Below the pieces are notes generated by a model. The model saw only the letters and a list, made by a program, of their open reading frames with translations, was not told where the DNA came from and did no database searches. A stretch of 63,449 nucleotides of DNA, counting the filler, from Octopus bimaculoides (Eukaryota): assembly GCF_001194135.2 (NCBI RefSeq). It is 5 parts of 4 records of this genome, joined end to end, with 100 filler letters (N's around TTAATTAATTAA, not from the genome) between each part and the next. Parts side by side here need not be neighbours in the genome. Positions count along the whole stretch, not along the records: positions 34,093 to 58,380 come from NC_069008.1; 4 more parts are not named here. The stretch is one strand, 5' to 3'. The position numbers and the translations under genes were made by a program. This document shows positions 38,985 to 58,177 of this stretch, piece by piece. Within the stretch, counting starts at the first letter, position 1. Every line of letters starts with the position of its first letter.

Positions 38985-39840
38985 TCAGTTTCAGCTCAAA
39001 GCCGTGGCAATGCTGGGGCACTGCCGTATTGCTATACTTATTATTAAGAGCCTCCTCTGATATGTGGCATATTTTGTGAATAAGGGAGTTTGATGTTACT
39101 GCCCTCATTTGTGCCTCCTGCTGGTGGGTTCATCTGGATCTCTAGACAAGAAGAGATCCATTTTTGTTTTGAAAACATCTACATCTACTTTGTGTAGGTT
39201 CTTCAGTGTCTTTGGGAGAATATGAAACCTAGGCTGTTGCAGTAACCGGTCCTGAAGCACAATGGCATTGTTGGGATCTTTGGCACTGTGCAGTGGTGAA
39301 CTGTTCTGGCATTTGTGCCGTTTCTGCCATCTCACCGTCTTTGTTGCCAATGTCCATATTGTTTGTGAAGCAGAGATCCAATATGTTATTCGGCCTGGTT
39401 GGTCTGAGCTCAATTTTCTCTATGAATGGGGCACTGGTGAGGCTGAGCAGGGACTCGACGACCTGTATTTGTTTACAAAGAGTCATTCCTCAGAGCATCA
39501 GGCCATCGTACCATTTGACACTTGGGAAATTGAAATCACCCATAAGAAAGACACTCACGTGATGTTCCAGTTTCTTGAGGGGTTTCTTTTATTCTTGTGA
39601 AGCAATCTTCAAACTTGCCTGGTGTGGTTTGGAGCATCTAGTGGGCGATGTGTATTGCATATGACTATATTGTGTTGTCTTATGTATATAACATGTCATA
39701 TATTGAATTTGAGTATGACAGTAGGACCTGGGGTGTGAGGTCCTCACGAATGTACAAAGCAACTCCACCATGGGTCCTTTCCCTTCTGCCCATTTGCAGT
39801 ATGGTATATTTTGGTACGTGTACTTCTACATCCTCTATAT
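38985..39840 (-). mobile_element. CR1/L2-like LINE with APE fragment joined directly to the ORF2 C-terminus and 3' tail
   Basis: RPTRPNNILDLCFTNN (end of endonuclease), then NARTVHHCTVPKIP...YCNSLGF / ILPKTLKNLHKVDVDVFKTKMDLFLSRDPDEPT and a SINE-like tail. Homologous to 53800-54290. Confidence 0.8.
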
Positions 39841-39844
39841 AGGG

Positions 39845-39877
<33 letters not shown>

Positions 39878-40214
39878 ATGCAAGAGAGTCAGGGGTTGAG
39901 GATTCAACCCACTATCCAATATACTGCTGGGAGGGTACCCAATTATTGTTACACTAGTGTTATACCAAGTGTAATAAGTGGGAGCGGGTAAAAGCGGGGG
40001 TTGTTTTACCCTAAATTCATATATCAATTAGAAAATGGAGGATAATATGCTGTACCCAACGACTTGCAGACAGTGTATCCCGTTGAATTCATTAACTTAA
40101 TTTGTAACTAAAGTGACATAAAAACCACAAAGTACAAGTGTTTATGACAAACCATGTTATATTGACAACCGGGTTTACAAATAAAAGTACATAAATTTGA
40201 GAATAAACAAACTT

Positions 40215-40343
40215 AATCTTACAGCTGTTTCGGCCTAGCGTTGGCATGCCCAATTCTATCCGAATAGCTCCTGCTGGAGTAATTAGCAGATGAAATGCTG
40301 AAATGGAAGTACATGCACGATTTGCTAGACCTCTTCAGAGATC
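40215..40343 (-). ncRNA. Minimal type I hammerhead ribozyme, probably in a Penelope-like pseudo-LTR
   Basis: Minus strand GATCT-CTGAAGA-GGTCTAGC-[84 nt]-GCTAGGCC-GAAAC-AGCT-GTA-AGATT. It has an intact CUGANGA/GAAA core, an 8-bp stem II with a G-C closing pair, a palindromic stem III loop, a GUA cleavage triplet and a 5-bp stem I. Confidence 0.8.
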
Positions 40344-40869
40344 CACAAAAAATTCCATACAAATATACAGTAAGAGATAAAAACAAAAATGAAATAGAAA
40401 TAAAAACAAAAATAAGGGTATAGCAAGAGTAAAATAAATAAATGAAAAATGAAAATATAACATATAAAAAATATAAATTTATAGGGCACATAAAAAGCCT
40501 ACAAACAGTACATGAGGTCATACAAATAGTTATAGACACTCCAATATATAAGTCCGTGTGCATAACCATACTTAGATGTTCAATGAGTCAAGATCATATA
40601 TATATATATATGTGAGTACACATGTGTGTCTATATACATCTATCCGCTCACACATAGGTATACATCTACAAATATGTATACACAGGCATTCTCCTATGTG
40701 CATGGTCTCTGGTACCATGATACCAACGCTATCTACTGTGTTTCGAAGGCTGTTTATGTTTTGTTTTTTTTAAAAATTTTGCTGAGTGTCAGTTCCGTAT
40801 ATTTTGGATGGGTTTGTGTGGAAGTTCATTTCATAGGAGTTCTTAATATTCTAGTAGCAGTAACAGTGA

Positions 40870-40902
<33 letters not shown>

Positions 40903-41142
40903 TAATATGCCAAACTTTCTAACTTTGTGGTGTAGGATATCCTGTTACTTCTTCCAGCGGGTAATACAGAGGTCCCTACATAATGAAAAGGGCATGGAAG
41001 TAGGGGAGGAGACGGAGAAAATTTGAAAAGAAAGAAAAAAACCAAAATTTTTCGAAAAACATTATTCTCAGACTCATAATTTTCATTACATAAAACAGAA
41101 ATATCAAAAAGAAAAAGTAGTTTACAAAAGAATCCATACAAA

Positions 41143-42315
41143 CTACCCTTTTCTTTTCTCTCCTGTATGAATAAGTTTGTGTTCAGTTAAATGACTATTT
41201 CGAGAGAATGATTTACCACAAAAATCACAATGATATGGCTTCTCTCCTGTATGAATACGTTTGTGCTTAGTTAAGACACTACTATCAGAGAATGATTTAC
41301 CACAGATATCACAGTGGTATGGCTTCTCTCCTGTATGACTACGTTTGTGTTTAGTTAAATCACCATTTTGAGAGAATGATTTACCACAGATATCACATTG
41401 ATAAGGCTTCTCTCCTGTATGAGTAAGTTTATGTCTATGTAAGGTACTACTTTCAGAGAATGATTTACCACAGATATCACAATAATATGGCTTCTCTCCT
41501 GTATGTATACGTTTGTGTGTAGAAATATTACTACTACCAGAGAATGATTTACCACAAATATCACAATAAAATGGCTTCTCTCCAGTATGAATACGTTTGT
41601 GAGTAGAAAGAATACTATTCAGTGAAAATGATTTACCACAGATATCACAATGATAAGGCTTCTCTCCTGTATGAATATGTTTATGTGTAGTTAAGTCATT
41701 ACATTTGGAGAATGATTTACCACAAATATCACAATGATATGGCTTCTCTCCTGTATGAATGTATTTGTGTCTTGGTAATGTACTACTATGAGAGAATGAT
41801 TTACCACAGATATCACAATGATATGGTTTCTCTCCTGTATGAATACGTTTGTGTGTAGAAAGATTACTACTCTGAGAGAATGATTTACCACAGATATCAC
41901 AATGAAATGGTTTCTCTCCTGAATGAATACGTCTATGTTTAGTTAAGTGACCATTTTGAGAGAATGATTTACCACAGATTTCACAGTGATACGGCTCCTC
42001 TCCAGTATGAGTAAGTCTGTGTACAGTTAAGTGACCAGTTTGAGAGAATGATTTACCACAGATATCACAATGATATGGCTTCTCCCGTGAATGAAAACGT
42101 TTGTGTTTAGTTAAGTAGCCTTCGCAGGAGAATGATTTGCCACAGATATCACAGTAATACAGCTTCTTTCTTTTATGAATATGCTTGTGTTCAGTGAGGT
42201 CACTTTTTCGAGAGAAGGACCTTTTACAGGCATCACAGTCATATGACAACTTTCCTGTCTCTTTAATCATGTCTTCACAGGAAATGAATTCTTCAAGCTT
42301 CTCACTCTTTTCCAT
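41143..42315 (-). CDS. C2H2 zinc-finger protein, ZNF gene 2 (390 aa, 13 fingers)
   Basis: Intact ORF: 47 aa through finger 1, then 12 x 28 aa, then TGEKRKG. Confidence 0.95.
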
Positions 42316-43816: not shown

Positions 43817-45039
43817 TATTTCTGAAACTAAAACACTCAACAAAGACGCATAAATCATAGGCATCCTTTTCCCATTGCTAGAAATAGCAGCGAAATCGCA
43901 CACAAATTATAAACATCTCTCATACATAAAAGATGAAGGAGACAAAATAGAAACAAGTCACAACCAGAATGTTTACAAAATTAGATTAAATATTTTCCTT
44001 GTGTAATACTTACGGAAATGTTTCAAAAAGGAAAGTATGTGTATAATAAGTATTAAACGTACTTTAATTGAGTGTGTGAAGTTGAGAAACGTATCAAAAG
44101 TGTTTGTAGAAGTTAATTAAAAGAAATACATGCACGAGAGAAACTTATTTTAAAAAACCAAAACGGAACTACAATCACGGCGCATGCGTATATAGTGTAT
44201 GAAACCCATGGGAGCTAACTCTTGTCCATACTTTTCAGCATAATGCCATTCCTGGTCTGTCTGTCTGTGTAACAAAAATTTCCTTGAACTAGTTTTAGAT
44301 ATTTTATGTGAAGGTAATTCTAAGTAGCAACACTGATTATAATCCTCCTAATAACTCTTACTTGGTGCCAACTTCTACATGTTCCAAGCCAGCTTATATA
44401 AGTCTCCCTGTCTGTCGAGCAACAGACAGCCCCATCGCGGTTCCATTAAGAGCAGGGGACGAAGCGAATGATACTAGCGCTATGAGACACATTCACAAAG
44501 AACATGCAATATATCAATATATGTGAAGGGGCGAAAACAGGATGAGGTAGAAGACTGAAAGCAAATGACCGAGGCTTGTATGGATAGTAACGTCATTGTT
44601 TTCAACCGGTTAAAACACATGTAGTGAAATAGATATACGATGTCACACAAACGTACAGCTGTGTCTGCGCATGCGCGTACATGTTTTGATAGATAGATAG
44701 ATAAAATGTGTGTATATATAGACATACAGACGCATATATATATATATATATACACCGCACAACGCTTTGTTGACAATCCATAGCAGTAATTATTTTCCCT
44801 CAATAGACGTCAGTGATTGGTTGAAATTACCGAAACACGACAATTTTTTTTACATAAAATAACTTCGAATACAAAAATTTTCTATCAGTTCTATAAGACA
44901 AAATATACAAGTATACGAAGTTTGAAAGTGTTTCGGTAGGAAACACACTAAATAAAACATAAATAAAAAGTGGCGTCTGCCAAATCAGAAAGATCCGCCA
45001 ATTGCATACGTATATATATGCGCTTGTGCCTATGTCCAC

Positions 45040-45731
45040 TAATTCATCCTGTTTTCGATCCTTACATATATTGATATATTGCATGATCTTTGTGAATGAC
45101 AGCCTCATTGAGCCAGTATCGATCGCTTCGCTACCAGTTCTTCGTGTAACCACGTTGGGGCTATTTGTTGTTCGACAGACAGGGAGACTTATAAGCTAGC
45201 TTGGAACATGTAGAAGTTGGCACCAGGAATGTTACGAGGATTATAATCAGTGTTTCTACTTAGAATTACATTCACATAAAATATCTAAAACTATTTGAAG
45301 AAAAATTTTGTTACATAGACCAGGCATGGTATTAACCTGAAAAGTACGGACAAGAGTTGGCTCCCATGTGTTTCATATAAAATATACGCATGCGCCATAA
45401 TTGTAGTTCCGTTTTGGTTTTTAAAAGAAGTTTCTCTCGTGCGTGTATTTCTTTTAATTAACTTCTACAAACACTTTTCATACGTTTTTCAACTTCACAC
45501 ACACTCAATTAAAGTACGTTTAATACATATTATACACACACTTTTGACAACTCTTTCCTTTATGAAATATTTCCGTAAGTATTACACCGAAAATATTTAA
45601 TCTTTTAATTCTGTAGACGATCTGGTTGGGACTTGTTTCTATTTTGCCTCCTTCATCTTTTATGCATGAGAGATGTTTATGATTTGTGTGAGATTTCGCT
45701 TATATTTCTAGCAATGGGAAAGGGATGTCGA
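45040..45731. promoter_or_regulatory. Upstream block B3 of ZNF gene 3, inverted relative to B2 (43820-44550)
   Basis: Reverse-complement homology; CGCATGCGC (45387) and TTGTAGTTCC (45401); GTAAGT donor-like site at 45575. Confidence 0.55.
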
Positions 45732-46209: not shown

Positions 46210-47382
46210 ATGGAAAAGAGTGAGAAGATTGAAGAATTGATGCCCTGTGAAGATATGATTAAAGAGATAAGAAAGTTGTCAAATGAGTGTGATGTCTGTA
46301 AAAGGTCCTTCTCTCAAGAAAGTGACCTAATTGAACACAAACATATTCATAGAAAAGAAAAGCTATATCATTGTGACATCTGTGGTAAATCATTCTCTCA
46401 CAGTAGTAACCTTTCTAAACACAAGCGGGTTCACAGAAGAGAGAAGTCCTATCATTGTGATATCTGTGGTAAATCGTTCTCTCAAAGTAGTAATCTTTCT
46501 ACACACATACGTATTCATACAGGAGAGAAGCCATATCATTGTGATATCTGTGGTAAATCATTCTCTCATAATCGTAACTTAACTGTACACAGACATAGTC
46601 ATACTGGACAGGAGCCATATCACTGTGATATCTGTGGTAAATCATTCTCTCAAAATAGTCAGTTAACTAAACATAAACGTATTCATTCAGGAGAGAAACC
46701 ATTTCATTGTGATATCTGTGGTAAATCATTCACTGACTGTAGTAATTTAAATTCACACAAACGTATTCATACAGGAGAGAAGCCATATAATTGTGATATC
46801 TGCAGTAAATCATTCTCCAGTAATAGTCACTTAACTGCACACATACGTTTTCATACACAGGAGAAGCCATATCATTGTGATACATGTGGTAAATCATTCT
46901 CTCAAAATAGTCACTTAACTGTACACGTACGTATTCATACAGGAGAGAAACCATATCAGTGTGATATCTGTGGTAAATCATTCTCTGATAGTAGTGTTTT
47001 ACCAAGACACAAATGTATTCATGCGGGAGAGAAACCATATCACTGTGATATCTGTGGTAAATCATTCTTTGATAGTAGTAATTTAACTAGACACAAACTT
47101 ACTCATACAGGAGAGAAGCCTTATCAATGTGATATCTGTGGTAAATCATTTTCTCAAAATGGTGATTTAACTAAACATAAACGTATTCATACAGGAGAGA
47201 AGCCATATCATTGTGATATCTGTGGTAAATCATTCTCTAATAGTAGTGTCTTAACTAAACATAAACGTAGTCACACAGGAGAGAACACATATCATTGTGA
47301 TTTTTGTGGTAAATCATTCTCTCGAAATAGTCATTTAACTGAACACAAACTTATTCATACAGGAGAGAAAAGAAAAGGGTAG
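46210..47382 (+). CDS. C2H2 zinc-finger protein, ZNF gene 3 (390 aa from ATG, 13 fingers)
   Basis: Intact ORF. The ATG at 46210 (MEKSEK) is preferred over the upstream TTG at 46195. Confidence 0.95.
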
Positions 47383-49069
47383 TTTGTATGGGTTCTTTTG
47401 TAAACTACTTTAATATTCCTGTGATTTATGTAAAATTTCTTTGTTTCCAAATTTTATCCCTATCTCCCCTACTTCCTTGCCCTTTTCGTAATGTAGAGTC
47501 CTCCGTTCCAGAATACCTCCTCCTGCCAACTCTATACATGGTTCTTTATTGAATATCACTTCCACAATTTACTGTATATTTATTAATTTTTCTATACAAA
47601 ACAAAAGAGACTGCAAAGGGAAAGCATAGGGCATAACTACACTTTAGTGCTCCACTACAGACTATTTTCTCATAAATTTCAAGAGTCATGTTTTATATCA
47701 AACTCAGTAAAGGTCTGGATTACAATTATCTTACTAAAATTTGAAGAAAAAATTTCTCAAGGAGAGTGTCATCCTTTTCGACTCCACCTTGGTTTTATCA
47801 GGGATCATAGCTATCATAGCCCAATTGATTAGGAAAAGGGATAGCCTAGGCGAGTGCCAGTAAGGCGAAGTTGGAAACGATTGCGCTTATTACATGTCAC
47901 CGTCATGGAAGCAAGGCCGCTGCTCTGGCAGTGATCTTGCTCGGATGGTGCTGTTAGCACTCCACTGGCACGGGTGCCAGTCATCGAATTTGGTTCTGTT
48001 TCGATCTCACTTGCCCCAACAGGTCTTCGCACGCTGAGTTTAGTGTCCAATTAAGGAAGGTTGGCATGTGTGCCAGTCAACAAATTTGGTTCAATTTTCG
48101 ATTTCATTTTTCTTTCTGTCAGCAAGATTTGGTTGCTGTTTCTAGTAACTCGAGCGACCAGGTAAAGGCTCTCTCATTGCCTCGTCTTGTTCCCTTCGTC
48201 ACTTGTTGTTTAGTCCTCAGTCGGATCTGATTGAACAGATATGATGTCCCAACTGTGACCATTCCATCTTTCTTCCCAGACATAATGGACTCTACGTGTT
48301 TATCACAGGATAGAGGTTTTTCTATTCTGTATATAAGAAAAAGTTTGGCTATGTTTTCTAGCAGGTCATGCAACCACATACAGGCTCCGTCGTTGGTCTG
48401 TCTCAGTAATAATTTTGTTGTAATTTTAGCCTCAGATCAACCCTAATGCAGCAAATCTATGTTGCCATAAAAACATCTCTGGTTATTAAAGAAGGGCTTT
48501 GTTAGGTGAGTGGGTGGACCCGAAAGTTGTTGTTCGCAAACAGCAGCAGTAGTTTTTTTCAGCTGACTACACATCATTAATTGGTTAAAATTACCCAAAT
48601 ACGACAACTTTAACACAAAATGACTTCTAAAATACAAAATTTTGTCAAGAACGTTAAGAGTAAACCCTGTTCTAAGTGACACATTCTACCAGTATCCGAA
48701 GTTTCAAAGTGTTTAGTTAAAAAAAAAATTAATTAAAAAATCTGTTGGTCAGATTGAAAAGATTCCATTTTAGACGGTTTCTAAAGTGGAGTGTTTTTGG
48801 ACCTTGGCTACAGCAATAACTAGTCCACTCATTGTGGATCCTTTCTTTAGGCTTTATTTTTCAGCAGTTTGACATACTTAATAAAAGCAATTTGTTTCAG
48901 ATTTTGTATTTCTTGTGCTGCAAATTTGATATGAAACTGTTCTTTTACATCTGGGAGGAGTCATATTTAAATAAAGCCTAAAAACACACACAGCAGGTGT
49001 TGTTTGTCTGTTTCATTTTTTACATTGCTTTCTTTTCAAAGTACTTGATGTTTGTTTGAGGCCCCATCT

Positions 49070-50250
49070 ATAGTTTTACCAATTTATTTGGCCAATCGAT
49101 ACAGAAAGGAGCCAATTGCATACGTATGTGCTTGTATGTTACATACACACAGCCACACACACATAGTTGTACATGCGTGTGAGTTCCTATATCTGTTCCT
49201 CTTCTTGTGTTCTCACTGAATTAAACAATGGCCGTGCTATCCAAACAAACCTCGGTCGTTTGCTTTCAGTCCACTACCTCATCCTATTTTCACTCCTTCA
49301 CATGTATTGGTATATTGCATGTTCTTTGTGAATGAAAGTCTTATTGAGCTTGTGTCATTCGCTTCGCTTCCAGCTCTTCGTGTAACTGGGTTGGGACTAT
49401 TTGCTGCTTGATAGACAGGGAAAACTTATAGGCTAGCTTGGAACATGTGGAAGTTAGCATCAGGAATGTTAGGAGGATTATAATCAGTGTTTCTATTAAG
49501 AATTACCTTCACATAAAATACCTAAAACTAATTCAAGAAAATTTTTATTACATGACAGACAGTTAAGGAATTGCATTAAGCCAATAAGTACGGACAGGAG
49601 TTAGCTCCCGTGTGTTTCATACAAAATATACGCATGCGCCATACTTGTAGATCCGCTAGAGGGTCTCGTGCATGAATTTCTCTTAACTTCTACAAACACT
49701 TTTGACACTCAATTAAAGTACGTTTAATTCCTATTATACACACTCTTTATAAGAACTCTTTCCCTTATAAAACATTTCCGTAAGTATTACACAATGAAAA
49801 TATTTAATCTTTTAATGCTGTTGTCTCCTTCATCTTTTATGCATGGGAAATGTTTATGATTTGTGTGTGATTTCGCTGCTATTTCTAGAAATAGGAAAGG
49901 GATGTCTGTAATTTATGCGAGATTTGACTGCCATTTCTAGCTATGGAAGGGAGATGTCTATTATTTGTACGAGTTTTGGCAGCTATTTCTAGTTATTGAA
50001 GACAGATGCCTGTGAGGTTTGGCTGCTATTTCTGCCTATGCAAGCCCCCATCTACACTCTCCATTGTTGCCTCGTTAGTCTGTTATATGTTTTAGTTTGA
50101 GAAATATTCTGAAGTACACTCCAATCACTGAACTGTTCAGTAAGAATTCGATACTTTATTATAATTTATGGAATGTTTGTTTCTTGATATAAGTACAGAT
50201 GTGTGCCGAAACCACTAGTAATTTATTTTCTCATAACTTGTTCAAGGTGC
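49070..50250. promoter_or_regulatory. Upstream block B4 of ZNF gene 4
   Basis: Homologous to B0-B3; CGCATGCGC at 49631 and GTAAGT at 49780. Confidence 0.55.
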
Positions 50251-50571: not shown

Positions 50572-51388
50572 CAATATTATTCTTTTTGTTTCTGTCAATT
50601 TTGGGGCGTTTCTGATGCTTATAGTTAGGAAGGTAATGACGAATGGAGAAATATTTATTGAGAAGGCAAATGGAAACAAAGTCAGAAATAGTGGAATCTA
50701 TGAAAAATGTAAAAGAAGCACAACTGAAAGAGAGAGAGAGGGAGATGATTTACACTCTACAGGGTGATTCAAAAGTCACCACACTTAAGAACAATTTTTT
50801 TTTAAAAGAAACAGTTTTTCTATTTAACTGTTTCTTATAACGAAATGAATTTTTCCTATGCATGGTGACTTTTGAATCACCCTGTAAATTGTAGAATTTT
50901 AAAAACAATTTGCTTCATAGCTGTGGTCACATGACCTGCTAGAAATAACAGTGCATTTCTCTTAAATTTCACCTTTCATTTATGAATATTGAAAACTATA
51001 TTGGAGGATGATGTCTTAGATATACAATACTAAAGAGTATGACAAGACGGAATGTCTTTAATTGTATTTCTGCTCAGTTAGAGATGCTCAGGGCGAAACA
51101 ACATTGTCAAATTATAAGTTCAGTTATTCAGGTAAATGTTTATTTCTGGAGAAATGTAAATTTTCCACTTTTGAATCTGTATTTTTAAGTAGCCTCCATA
51201 TTTTACACTGATGTATCTTTATTTCAGAATATCATATGACATTGGGATAACTGAAGATACATCCTCAATATTTATCATCTTTTAAGACTGAAAGAAAATG
51301 ATGTACAAAGCAAATTCTTTGTAAAGAGTGAACTATAAGAAGGAAAACAAGAACATTATATATACATTGTGATTTGAGGAGAAAAATA

Positions 51389-52852
51389 ATGGAAAAGAGT
51401 GAGAAGGTTGAAGCGTTCATTTCTGATGTCTGTAAAAGGTCCTTCTCTCGAAAAAGTGACCTAACTGAACACAAACATATTCGAATAAGAAAGAAGCCAT
51501 ATAATTGTGATATCTGTGGTAAATCATTCTCTCAAACTAGTAATTTAACTGTACACAGACTAATTCATACTGGAGAGGAGCCATATCACTGTGATATCTG
51601 TGGTAAATCATTTTCTCAAAATGATCACCTCACTAAACATAAACGTATTCATTCAGGAGAGAAACCATTTCATTGTGATATCTGTAGTAAATCATTCTCT
51701 CAGAGTAGTAATCTTTCTAGACACATACGTATTCATACTGGAGAGGAGCCATATCACTGTGATATCTGTGGTAAATCATTCTCTCATAGTAGTGCTTTAC
51801 CAAGACACAAATATATTCATACAGGAGAGAAACAATATCATTGTGTTATCTGTGGTAAATCATTCTGTGACAGTAGTGCTTTACCAAGACACAAACGTAT
51901 TCATACAGGAGAGAAGTCATATCATTGTGATATCTGTGGTAAATCTTTCCCTGTTGGTAGTGACTTAACTAAACACAAACGTATTCATACAGGAGAGAAA
52001 CCATATCATTGTGATATTTGTGATAAATCATTCTCTTGGATTAGTAATCTTTCTACACACAAGCGTATCCATACAGGAGAGAAGTCATATCACTGTGATA
52101 TCTGTGGTAAATCATTCTCTCAAAATGGTGACTTGACTACACACAAACATACTCATACAGGAGAGAAACCATATCATTGTGATATTTGTGGTAAATCATT
52201 CTCTAGGAGTAGTAATCTTTCTACACACAAACGTATTCACACAGGTGAGAAGTCATATCATTGTGATATCTGTAGTAAGTCATTCTCCAAATGTAATGAC
52301 TTAACTAGACATAAACATATTCATACAGGAGAGAAGCCTTATCAGTGTGATATCTGTGGTAAATCATTCTCTCTGAATAGTATCCTTTCTAGGCACAAGC
52401 GTATTCATACTGGAGAGAAGCCATATTACTGTGATATTTGTGGTAAATCATTCTCTGGTAGTAGTAATCTTTCTATACACAAACGTATACATACAGGAGA
52501 GAAGCCATATTATTGTGATATCTGTGGTAAATCATTCTCTGAAAGTAGTACTTTTCATAGACACAAACTTACTCATACAGGAGAGAAGCCTTATCAATGT
52601 GATATCTGTGATAAATCATTCAATCAAAATGGTGACTTAACTAAACACAAACGTATTCATACAGGAGAGAAGCCATACCACTGTGATATCTGTGGTAAAT
52701 CATTTTCTAATAGTAGTGACTTAACTAAACATAAACGTAGTCATACAGGAGAGAAACCATATCATTGTGATATCTGTGGTAAATCATTCTCTCGAAATAG
52801 TCATTTAAATGAACACAAACTTATTCATACAGGAGAAAAAAGAAAAGGGTAG
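51389..52852 (+). CDS. C2H2 zinc-finger protein, ZNF gene 4 (487 aa from ATG, 16 intact fingers + 1 degenerate)
   Basis: Intact ORF. The first finger lacks Cys1 because of a 15-codon in-frame deletion, and its last His is replaced by Arg. Confidence 0.95.
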   Translation: MEKSEKVEAFISDVCKRSFSRKSDLTEHKHIRIRKKPYNCDICGKSFSQTSNLTVHRLIHTGEEPYHCDICGKSFSQNDHLTKHKRIHSGEKPFHCDICSKSFSQSSNLSRHIRIHTGEEPYHCDICGKSFSHSSALPRHKYIHTGEKQYHCVICGKSFCDSSALPRHKRIHTGEKSYHCDICGKSFPVGSDLTKHKRIHTGEKPYHCDICDKSFSWISNLSTHKRIHTGEKSYHCDICGKSFSQNGDLTTHKHTHTGEKPYHCDICGKSFSRSSNLSTHKRIHTGEKSYHCDICSKSFSKCNDLTRHKHIHTGEKPYQCDICGKSFSLNSILSRHKRIHTGEKPYYCDICGKSFSGSSNLSIHKRIHTGEKPYYCDICGKSFSESSTFHRHKLTHTGEKPYQCDICDKSFNQNGDLTKHKRIHTGEKPYHCDICGKSFSNSSDLTKHKRSHTGEKPYHCDICGKSFSRNSHLNEHKLIHTGEKRKG

Positions 52853-53789: not shown

Positions 53790-54790
53790 GATTGAGCTGT
53801 GGCTCTGTTGTGAAATGGAGATCCAATATGTTATTTGCCCTGTTTGGTCTGAGCTCATTTTTCTCTATGAATAGGGCACTGGTGAGGTTAAGCAGGGACT
53901 CCACCTGTACTTGTTTGCAATGAGTCATTCTTCAGAGCATGAGGGCCCCTGGCCATTTGACACTGAGGAAATTGAAATCACCCATAACAAAAACACTCAC
54001 ATGATGTTCCAGTTTCTTGAGGGTTTCTTTTATTCTTGTGAGGCAATCTCCAAATTTCTATGTGTAGTTTGGATCATCCGTTGGGCGATATGTATTGCAT
54101 GACTTTACTGGGTTGTCTTATGTATACAACTACTTATAGTGTCATATACTGAATTTGAGTGTGACAGTAGGATCTGGGGCATGATGTGTTCACAGATGTA
54201 TCCAGCAACTTCACCATGGGTCCTTTCCCTTCTGTCCATTTGCAGTATAGTATATTTTGGTGCGTGTACTTTTGCATCTTTTATATCAGGCCTAAGATGA
54301 GTTTCCACAAGTGCTATGCATAAGACTTGATTGCATGAGCAGTGTCTCTCTGGAAAAAGATTTTGCATTTGTTGTTGTCATGCAACAGGCCGCCAATATT
54401 TAGTTAAAATATTGGCATGACGATTGTGCTAGCATTAGGTGAAGCCATCCTGAGTCTGTTGATTGTGGCAGTCTTGTGCAGTGGTGGGCGAGGTTCAGTT
54501 TGCACTTAATGTAGCCAGGTCAGCTGTTGCACGATCTTTTGCACCATGCACAAAAATGACTTTTGCTCAGTTGCTGCATTTCGTATAACATCTGAAGAGA
54601 GCACTGCATCCACATACTTCCTCTTTGGAGAAGATTAGTGCCTTGCCTCTGAGAAGTATTTCTCCTGAAGGCTCTCGTAGTTTTGGCAGGGTCTCAGTTG
54701 AGCAAACAGTGTGTACCATCTTCCCCATGCTAACATTTGGCTTGCAGGTAAAATGTGCACGTGCTCGTCTTCACTCCATATTTTTATTCC
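53790..54790 (-). mobile_element. CR1/L2-like LINE 5' part: ORF1 Cys/His-rich remnant plus APE endonuclease
   Basis: ORF 54105-54368 has IALVETHLRPDIKDAKVHAPKYTILQMDRRERTHGEVAGY (APE). Upstream CTFYLQAKC*HG...C resembles CCCH fingers. Same family as 38985-39840. Confidence 0.8.
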
Positions 54791-55164: not shown

Positions 55165-55722
55165 CAGAGGTTGGACTAAATAATGGAAACACCTTAAAAT
55201 TTCAAACAAATTTATTTTAATATGGGGTAGGACCACCTTTGGCAGTAATTACAGCTTGAATTCTATTAAGTATGGACTCATACAAAGTTTAAATTTTTGT
55301 CCATTCTTCAGCTAAATCAGTCTCCAGTTCCTGTAGCGATGATGGTGGCGGATATCGACTCCTTACTTGTTTTTCTAAAATGCACCATAAATGTTCAATA
55401 ATATTGAGATCTGGGGACTGTAGTAGCCAGATAAGAAACTCAACTTCACTAGAATGTTCCTCGTACCATTCAGTAACAACTTTAGCGATGTGAATTGATG
55501 CATTATCATCCCGAAAGATTGTGTTTCCCTCCAGAAACAGTTCCGCAACCATAGGATGAATTTGATCAGATAAAATGCTTAGTCTTGACCATTAATTCTG
55601 CCATGAAGGGAAACCATTGGGCCAAATGATTTCCAAGATATAGCCCCCTAGATCATCACAGATCCTCCTCCATGTTTAATGTTGGAAGAAGGCAGTCTGG
55701 GTCAAATGCTTCTTTTGGCTGT
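55165..55722 (-). mobile_element. Tc1-like transposon, 3' half
   Basis: KHGGGSVMI*GAISW...FRDDNASIH...QSPDLNIIEHLW (DD34E spacing); TIR-like end CAGAGGTTGGACTAAATAATGGAAACACC. Confidence 0.92.
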
Positions 55723-55829
55723 GTATATATATATATGTGCATATACATATATATATATATATATAGTTCTGCAACACATCACCGCTTACTTTACAAATTG
55801 TGAAATTTGTGATTACACGTATGCTGTAG

Positions 55830-57340: not shown

Positions 57341-58177
57341 CTACCCTTTTCTTTTCTCTCCCGTATGAATAAATTTGTGTTCAGTTAAATGACTATTTCG
57401 AGAGAATGATTTGCCACAAAAATCACAGTAATATGGTTTCTCTCCTGTATGAATACGTTTGTGTCTTGGTAAAGCACTACTGTCAGAGAATGATTTACCA
57501 CAGATATCACAATGATATGGCTTTTTTCCTGTATGAGTACGTATATGTCTAGTTAAATTACAATTTTGAGAAAATGATTTACCACAGATATCACATTGAT
57601 AAGGCTTCTCTCCTGTATGAGTACGTTTGTGTTTAGTTAAGTCACAACTATCAGAGAATGATTTACCACAGATATCACAGTGATATGGTTTCTCTCCAGT
57701 ATGAGCACGCTTGTGTGAAGTTAAAGCATTACTATGAGAGAAGGATTTACCACAGATATCACAATGAAATGGTTTCTCTCCTGTATGAATACGTTTATGT
57801 CTAGCTAAGTGACTACTGTCAGAGGATGATTTACCACAGATATCACAATGATATGGCTTTTTTCCTGTATGAGTAAGTTTGTGTGAAGTTAAAGCATTAC
57901 TATAAGAGAAGGATTTACCACAGATATCACAATGAAATGGTTTCTCTCCTGTATGAATACGTTTATGTCTAGATAAGTGACTACTGTCAGAGAATGATTT
58001 ACCACAGATATCACATTGATACAGCTTCTTTCTCCTATGAATATGTTTGTGTTCAATTAGGTCACTTTTTCGAGAGAAGGACCTTTTACAGACATCACAG
58101 TCATATGATGGCTTTCTCATCTCTTTTATCACGTCTTCATGAGAAATCACTTCTTCAACCTTCTCACTCTTTTCCAT
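57341..58177 (-). CDS. C2H2 zinc-finger protein, ZNF gene 5 (278 aa from ATG, 9 fingers)
   Basis: Intact ORF from MEKSEK to TGEKRKG. A 168-bp two-finger tandem duplication occurs at 57713/57881. AATAAA (minus strand) at 57280-57285. Confidence 0.95.

Follow-up and report, generated by a model that had tools for sequence, protein, structure and literature searches.

In a 63,449-nucleotide window of Octopus bimaculoides DNA, an intact hammerhead ribozyme motif spans 129 nt of the minus strand (40343-40215, by strand read-out and block location), beginning 799 nt past the TAG stop codon of a C2H2 zinc-finger (ZNF) open reading frame (ORF), gene 2, with which it shares its strand. The account that we favor, and that we hold to be rather probable, is that the motif represents an orphan hammerhead of the Penelope-like element (PLE) type, derived from a truncated or decayed retroelement, probably weak or inactive as a monomer and unrelated to the AATAAA-to-AATGAA change at the poly(A) signal of gene 2. 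Coordinates are those of the whole window, and the 24-kb piece of it that was searched carries the motif together with five paralogous C2H2 ZNF ORFs (g1-g5, gene 2 being g2).

Architecture of the motif and its expectation by chance

All invariant hammerhead nucleotides are present in the motif, namely CUGAAGA, GAAA, U16.1 and A17. Read along the minus strand, the 5' strand of helix I (GAUCU, 40343-40339) pairs over 5 bp, one of them G-U, with the 3' strand (AGAUU, 40219-40215), and is followed by the core box C3-U4-G5-A6-A7-G8-A9 (40338-40332), which matches CUGANGA exactly. Helix II is formed by a 5' strand, GGTCTAGC as DNA and GGUCUAGC as RNA (40331-40324), whose first base is G10.1, and a 3' strand, GCTAGGCC as DNA and GCUAGGCC as RNA (40239-40232), whose last base is C11.1. 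This helix comprises 8 bp, including one U-G, and opens with G10.1-C11.1; A9 abuts it directly, leaving no unpaired base, and inspection indicated that a one-base shift of the register would break the helix at its second pair. Helix II closes a domain of 84 nt (40323-40240), predicted to extend it as an imperfect hairpin. The core resumes with G12-A13-A14 (40231-40229), inside the sequence GAAAC at 40231-40227, and leads into helix III, the palindrome ACAGCUGU at 40228-40221, in which A15.1-U16.1 and C15.2-G16.2 surround the self-complementary loop AGCU (40226-40223). Helix III accordingly amounts to 2 bp within a single copy and to 8 bp when two copies pair. The predicted cleavage site lies at 40220/40219, after A17 and before A1.1, as judged from the GUA triplet (GTA at 40222-40220) relative to the core.

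We thus reproduced the core, the 5-bp helix I, the 8-bp helix II, the palindromic helix III and the cut position given in a preliminary description of this DNA, as well as the sense orientation of the motif about 800 nt past the gene 2 stop. Its further designation as a complete minimal hammerhead applies to the core and to helix III, but not to the size of the element, as the two arms of helix II stand 84 nt apart and this domain makes the whole element large. A BLAST-type self-comparison revealed no copy of the 84-nt domain elsewhere in the 24-kb piece. The possibility that the insert is a mini-intron or a later insertion was considered and set aside, as neither splice sites nor a target-site duplication looked convincing on inspection.

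The minimal hammerhead ribozymes (min-HHRs) of metazoan PLEs have been described with a helix II of about 7-8 bp, which is longer than usual, a helix I of 4-5 bp, G10.1-C11.1, a palindromic 15.2-16.2 pair plus loop 3, and an unpaired base between positions 9 and 10.1 (PMC4209133). The octopus motif shares with them the type I topology, the 8-bp helix II, the 5-bp helix I, G10.1-C11.1, and a helix III of minimal length whose palindromic loop could form a dimer. Four of the five published features are therefore found in the motif, the unpaired base being the one that is absent, in large agreement with the PLE-type architecture and dimer-capable helix III that the preliminary description had proposed.

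The hammerhead search suggested in that description gave a divided result. Rfam hammerhead covariance models (cmscan) returned no match at E<=10, either in the 24-kb piece or in the 201 nt around the motif, probably because of the long helix II insert and the near-absent helix III. By contrast, a descriptor that allows a helix II loop of <=100 nt and a helix III loop of <=60 nt, applied to both strands of the piece, returned the motif at 40343-40215 as its single match. In 1500 dinucleotide-preserving shuffles, the permissive form of this descriptor matched 0.04 times per piece, and at the observed stem lengths it matched 0.0007 times per piece. Requiring in addition a compact palindromic helix III, an extra feature not demanded by the scanning descriptor, lowered the analytic expectation to ~2e-6 per piece and ~0.2 per 2.7-Gb genome. 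Simulation of 50 Mb of Markov sequence produced a single permissive match and none with a helix II of at least 6 bp. Given these low chance expectations, we treat the motif as the descendant of a real hammerhead, even when allowing for the unstated number of windows that had been screened beforehand.

No convincing second or degenerate hammerhead, with one core mismatch or bulge allowed, was found in the 24-29 kb searched; a candidate at 36116-36250 was rejected as weak, having a 4-bp stem and lying at chance level. Translated and exact 22-mer searches for other copies, the 22-mers being scanned in metagenome contigs, likewise returned nothing. The sole HMMER match to the frame-1 translation across the motif, among 1.84 billion representatives, was dismissed as an unrelated tandem-repeat protein with 16 weak stretches, and the product of a 116-amino-acid ORF covering the motif was absent from the public record in an exact-product look-up.

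Predicted folding of the element

The isolated 129-nt element reaches a minimum energy of -33.9 kcal/mol (z = -1.0) in a predicted fold that includes helices I and II and in which C3-U4-G5 pairs with CAG of helix III. When the same 129 nt are constrained to the hammerhead, the predicted energy is -29.1 kcal/mol, corresponding to ~2e-4 of the ensemble; the addition of 30 or 100 nt of flank drops the hammerhead fraction to ~2e-7 and 1e-9, respectively, and the energetic penalty of adopting the hammerhead fold in context is 9.5-12.8 kcal/mol. In a 151-nt interval with 10-12 nt of flank per side (fold energy z = -0.34), helix I, the core box and the first part of helix II are tied up in a local hairpin, GGAUCUC-UGAA-GAGGUCU. 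This competing hairpin is predicted to form ~90 nt ahead of transcription of the helix II 3' arm.

The helix II domain, taken as 100 nt, is predicted to form an imperfect extended hairpin of -29.1 kcal/mol (z = -2.08), a stability equalled by 9 of 200 shuffles; on inspection, helix II opens past its 8 bp into an internal loop of 5 nt on one side and 3 nt on the other. Cofolding of two trimmed copies yielded an 8-bp intermolecular helix via the helix III palindrome. A tertiary contact between loop 1 and loop 2 matters for fast hammerhead cleavage at physiological Mg2+ (PMC3088659). Inspection revealed neither such a contact nor a pseudoknot in the motif, the 5-bp helix I of which is open and has no loop 1. 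Since energy models ignore tertiary stabilisation, these predictions weigh against efficient folding without excluding it.

The ZNF paralogs and the repeats around the motif

Gene 2 (41143-42315, minus strand) encodes 390 amino acids with ~12 fingers, shows an 84-bp finger periodicity and ends at the TAG at 41145-41143. Alignment of the 3' flanks bore out the earlier statement that AATGAA (41087-41082, minus strand) occupies the position at which g4 (ending at 52852, plus strand) and g5 (ending at 57341, minus strand) carry AATAAA, 56 nt past the stop. The claim that no AATAAA or ATTAAA occurs between the stop and the ribozyme was also confirmed, and extends further: neither hexamer was found past the stop for 1500 nt in gene 2, ~1.1 kb in g3 or 1300 nt in g1. 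In g3 (46210-47382, plus strand) the AATAAA region is deleted, leaving a signal-less flank at 47382-47440. The canonical signal is thus missing in two of the four comparable paralogs, and as g3 is also without it, the loss is not peculiar to gene 2, the paralog next to the ribozyme.

Between the gene 2 stop and the motif, we observed AATGAA (at +56 and +313), AATATA (+340), TTTAAA (+369), CATAAA (+385) and TATAAA (+660), and the U/GU-rich stretch past the first AATGAA is retained. AAUGAA is one of the minor poly(A) hexamers used in animals. The paralogs have in common a 3' flank of ~180 nt, which in gene 2 covers 40966-41142 (minus strand) and ends at the edge of the duplicated unit. BLAST within the piece gave an identity of 85-89% between the gene 2 flank and those of g4 and g5, and of 83-97%, in two short pieces, with that of g3, and detected no paralog homology past ~40966. 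Because the flank homology stops ~180 nt past the stop, the motif falls beyond the conserved 3' region, in unrelated DNA that is rich in repeats, and the ancestral 3' end of the paralogs probably fell within the shared flank.

The ATG-start products of g3 (46210-47382) and g4 (51389-52852) are called in GCA_001194135.2 on CM046628.1, at ~15.18-15.20 Mb, and the DNA of CM046628.1 matches the motif identically (span 15176150-15202792). The products of the intact minus-strand ORFs g2 and g5 were not among the public gene calls in an exact-product look-up. As gene 2 is uncalled in the public record, its status as an expressed gene is putative. When the full-length gene 2 protein served as query, vertebrate C2H2 proteins at <=62% identity dominated the matches, and orthologues were not discernible among them. 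A search with its 56-residue N-terminus gave zero candidates, a weak negative, as paralogs sharing words with it sit in the collection. The remaining paralog, g1 (36305-36925), contains an N run that marks an assembly gap, and its C-terminus reads …GEKPIHRTML where the family has …HTGEKRKG; it is likely a pseudogene or an assembly problem.

No ORF of at least 100 amino acids in the piece encodes a PLE reverse transcriptase (RT) with GIY-YIG, no tandem array covers the motif, and no tRNA-like head of a short interspersed element (SINE) was found near it. A Pfam search of the three minus-strand frames of 38700-40620 gave as its sole signal a weak match to the endonuclease Exo_endo_phos_2 of a long interspersed element (LINE; E = 0.0034), at about 39350-39620 on the minus strand, within an internally deleted LINE-like repeat. 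This LINE-derived repeat is present in two copies of like orientation (39363-39840 and 53808-54286) that are 83.5% identical. In the copy at 39363-39840, the endonuclease fragments GGVALYIRED, MGDFNFP and LDLCFTNN are fused to a LINE ORF2 C-terminal tail, FKTKMDLFL..PDEP, and the repeat looks like an internally deleted, non-autonomous LINE. The motif is held within a ~718-bp segment bracketed by two microsatellite tracts, (TA)10 at 39858-39877 and (TA)8 at 40596-40611. PLEs have been reported to prefer microsatellite targets (PMC8557442), and the bracketed segment could represent the insertion unit, or the split microsatellite target, of a retroelement.

Other repeats were noted in the piece. 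A repeat of ~83 bp recurs between the ZNF genes in at least five copies of 84-90% identity (38800-38883, 35273-35358, 44363-44422 and, on the minus strand, 45162-45244 and 49398-49480), and is probably a fragment of a SINE or of a miniature inverted-repeat transposable element (MITE). At 50752-50890 (minus strand), a hairpin of ~130 nt has long near-perfect terminal arms; it matched the plant microRNA (miRNA) precursor MIR9481 below threshold (E = 0.00065; 34.5 bits, with a gathering score of 130) and, rather than being a miRNA, is more likely what remains of an inverted-repeat transposon. Further sub-threshold matches, to mir-297, mir-466, mir-1277 and a pestivirus 3' untranslated region (UTR), at 40595-40684, 44685-44768 and 55703-55782, were discarded as artefacts of TA/CA microsatellite composition.

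Origin of the motif and comparison with known hammerheads

In the favored account, a truncated or decayed PLE, or a non-autonomous derivative of one, would have left the motif ~0.8 kb downstream of a ZNF gene. Within a native PLE, such a motif lies in the terminal repeats, where its presumed role is to process the RNA precursor of the retroelement itself, its activity arising when two copies pair via the palindromic helix III. We infer this origin from the motif itself, its improbability, its likeness to PLE hammerheads, its solitude and its position beyond the shared ZNF flank, amid microsatellites and a LINE fragment. Poor or no cleavage is to be expected from its solitude, the 2-bp helix III, the lack of loop-loop contacts, the 84-nt domain and the competing hairpin. 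The strand shared with gene 2 and the AATAAA-to-AATGAA change are, in this account, probably coincidences.

Several observations weigh against such an origin. Neither a PLE reading frame nor a recognisable terminal repeat adjoins the motif, and no further copy that would show a family with covariation was found in the 24-29 kb searched or by the translated and 22-mer searches. PLE min-HHRs usually carry an unpaired base where A9 and G10.1 of the motif are contiguous, and an 84-nt helix II domain in place of a small loop is undescribed among them. Moreover, the motif is fully intact bar two G-U pairs, which is unexpected for a very old neutral relic, with the caveat that it was flagged because it is intact.

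The function proposed in the preliminary description, namely that gene 2 lost its poly(A) signal, that its transcripts extend for at least 800 nt and that the hammerhead cuts them, producing a paralog-specific down-regulation like that of Clec2, appears to us highly improbable. It accords with the common strand and the distance of 799 nt, with AATGAA in place of AATAAA and the lack of AATAAA or ATTAAA over 1500 nt, and with an intact motif that is no chance match; in Xenopus, moreover, the retrozyme copies that overlap exons tend to do so in 3' UTRs (Li et al. 2026, bioRxiv 10.64898/2026.07.22.740005). However, the conserved 3' flank does not extend to the motif, g3 has lost its signal too yet has no ribozyme, and five kinds of variant hexamer together with the retained U/GU-rich stretch precede the motif. 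A dimer partner is absent from the 24-29 kb searched, single min-HHRs gave no detectable cleavage in vitro (PMC4209133), a hairpin competes with the core, and gene 2 itself is uncalled in the public record. Beyond co-orientation and proximity, we therefore found no support for read-through, self-cleavage or paralog-specific control. We give hardly any credence to a co-option in which a PLE-type hammerhead cuts the read-through RNA of this signal-less octopus ZNF paralog, perhaps with cleavage assisted by host factors or by transcript-transcript pairing, and in which the 84-nt helix II domain might serve as a regulatory module.

A competent hammerhead that belongs to another transcript (a remnant of a retroelement that is expressed, a non-coding RNA, or the product of read-through by RNA polymerase II past the gene) and does not control the gene 2 mRNA level is, in our estimate, unlikely. 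The tandem arrangement that retrozymes and their circular RNAs need is lacking, and hammerhead cleavage yields a 5'-hydroxyl, which is a poor entry for the 5'-3' exonuclease of termination. In its favor, the motif retains an intact core and intact helices, the minimum-energy fold of the isolated 129 nt includes helices I and II, two copies would be able to pair via helix III, and the (TA)n-bracketed segment of ~718 bp could be an insertion unit. It is very unlikely, finally, that the motif matches the hammerhead consensus by chance and has no ribozyme ancestry. The case for chance draws on the shortness of the consensus and the fortuitous matches to be expected in large data sets (PMC3088659), on the failure of all Rfam hammerhead models to score the motif, on a fold energy that is unremarkable at both 151 nt and 129 nt, and on the unstated number of windows that had been screened. 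Although the 84-nt spacer adds search freedom, the rate of 0.0007 per piece at the observed stems already includes a spacer freedom of 100 nt; with the short palindromic helix III as a further requirement, the expectation is ~0.2 matches per whole genome, and the 50 Mb of simulated sequence contained none with such stems. Chance is also made less likely by two features over and above those needed for a match, namely G10.1-C11.1 and a perfect palindrome of 8 nt.

As dispersed retroelement-type hammerheads are known in thousands in many animal genomes, the motif matters little beyond annotation. We found no description of hammerhead motifs in cephalopods in the literature searched, and the motif may accordingly serve as a starting sequence for a catalogue of PLE-type ribozymes from octopus genomes. 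It is probably hidden from Rfam by the 84-nt helix II domain, and if this domain is a family trait, standard searches would undercount such elements. If the motif did cut gene 2 read-through RNA, it would rank among the rare ribozymes domesticated to control an mRNA, which we judge unlikely; co-option, if true, would constitute the first such case outside mammals and would provide paralog-specific post-transcriptional control in a lineage-specific ZNF cluster.

Among known systems, genomes ranging from cnidarian to vertebrate each contain thousands of PLE min-HHRs (Cervera & de la Pena 2014, PMC4209133). The majority are scattered singly and probably stem from truncated PLEs, and most genomic copies are without an ORF; cleavage by a single min-HHR was undetectable, and dimeric or trimeric constructs showed little (PMC4209133). 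The octopus motif, solitary and with no adjacent retroelement ORF, resembles most of these genomic copies, and differs from a PLE min-HHR in having no terminal repeat or RT/GIY-YIG ORF nearby. The congener O. vulgaris has PLEs among its recognised repeat classes, and their expansion has been reported at ~56 My (PMC13282606).

Metazoan non-LTR (long terminal repeat) retrozymes consist of tandem repeats of ~170-400 bp; every repeat contains a type I hammerhead, the canonical form of which has a helix II of 4 bp, a helix I of 6 bp and loop 1-loop 2 contacts (Cervera & de la Pena 2020, PMC7229834; Li et al. 2026, bioRxiv). The motif is similar to these in its type I topology, the 2-bp helix III under a tetraloop, the AT-rich surroundings and a presumed PLE-dependent origin. 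It occurs as one copy, however, with neither a tandem array nor loop 1-loop 2 contacts, and the lack of an array and of a second copy means that it does not fit a retrozyme.

The mammalian Clec2 hammerheads, which Martick et al. reportedly described in 2008, are said to be discontinuous 3'-UTR ribozymes with an insertion in helix I, conserved across species and cleaving efficiently, and their proposed effect is reportedly a lower mRNA level. The octopus motif likewise lies on the sense strand, past a coding region, and has one helix interrupted by a long insertion, but this insertion is in helix II rather than helix I, the Clec2 motif lies in a documented 3' UTR, and cleavage by the octopus motif, unlike that of the efficient Clec2 hammerheads, is doubtful. 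The hammerheads of newt and salamander satellite 2 and of avocado sunblotch viroid differ from the solitary octopus motif in that tandem or multimeric transcripts join two copies, and share with it a weak helix III, a palindromic loop and an activity expected upon pairing only.

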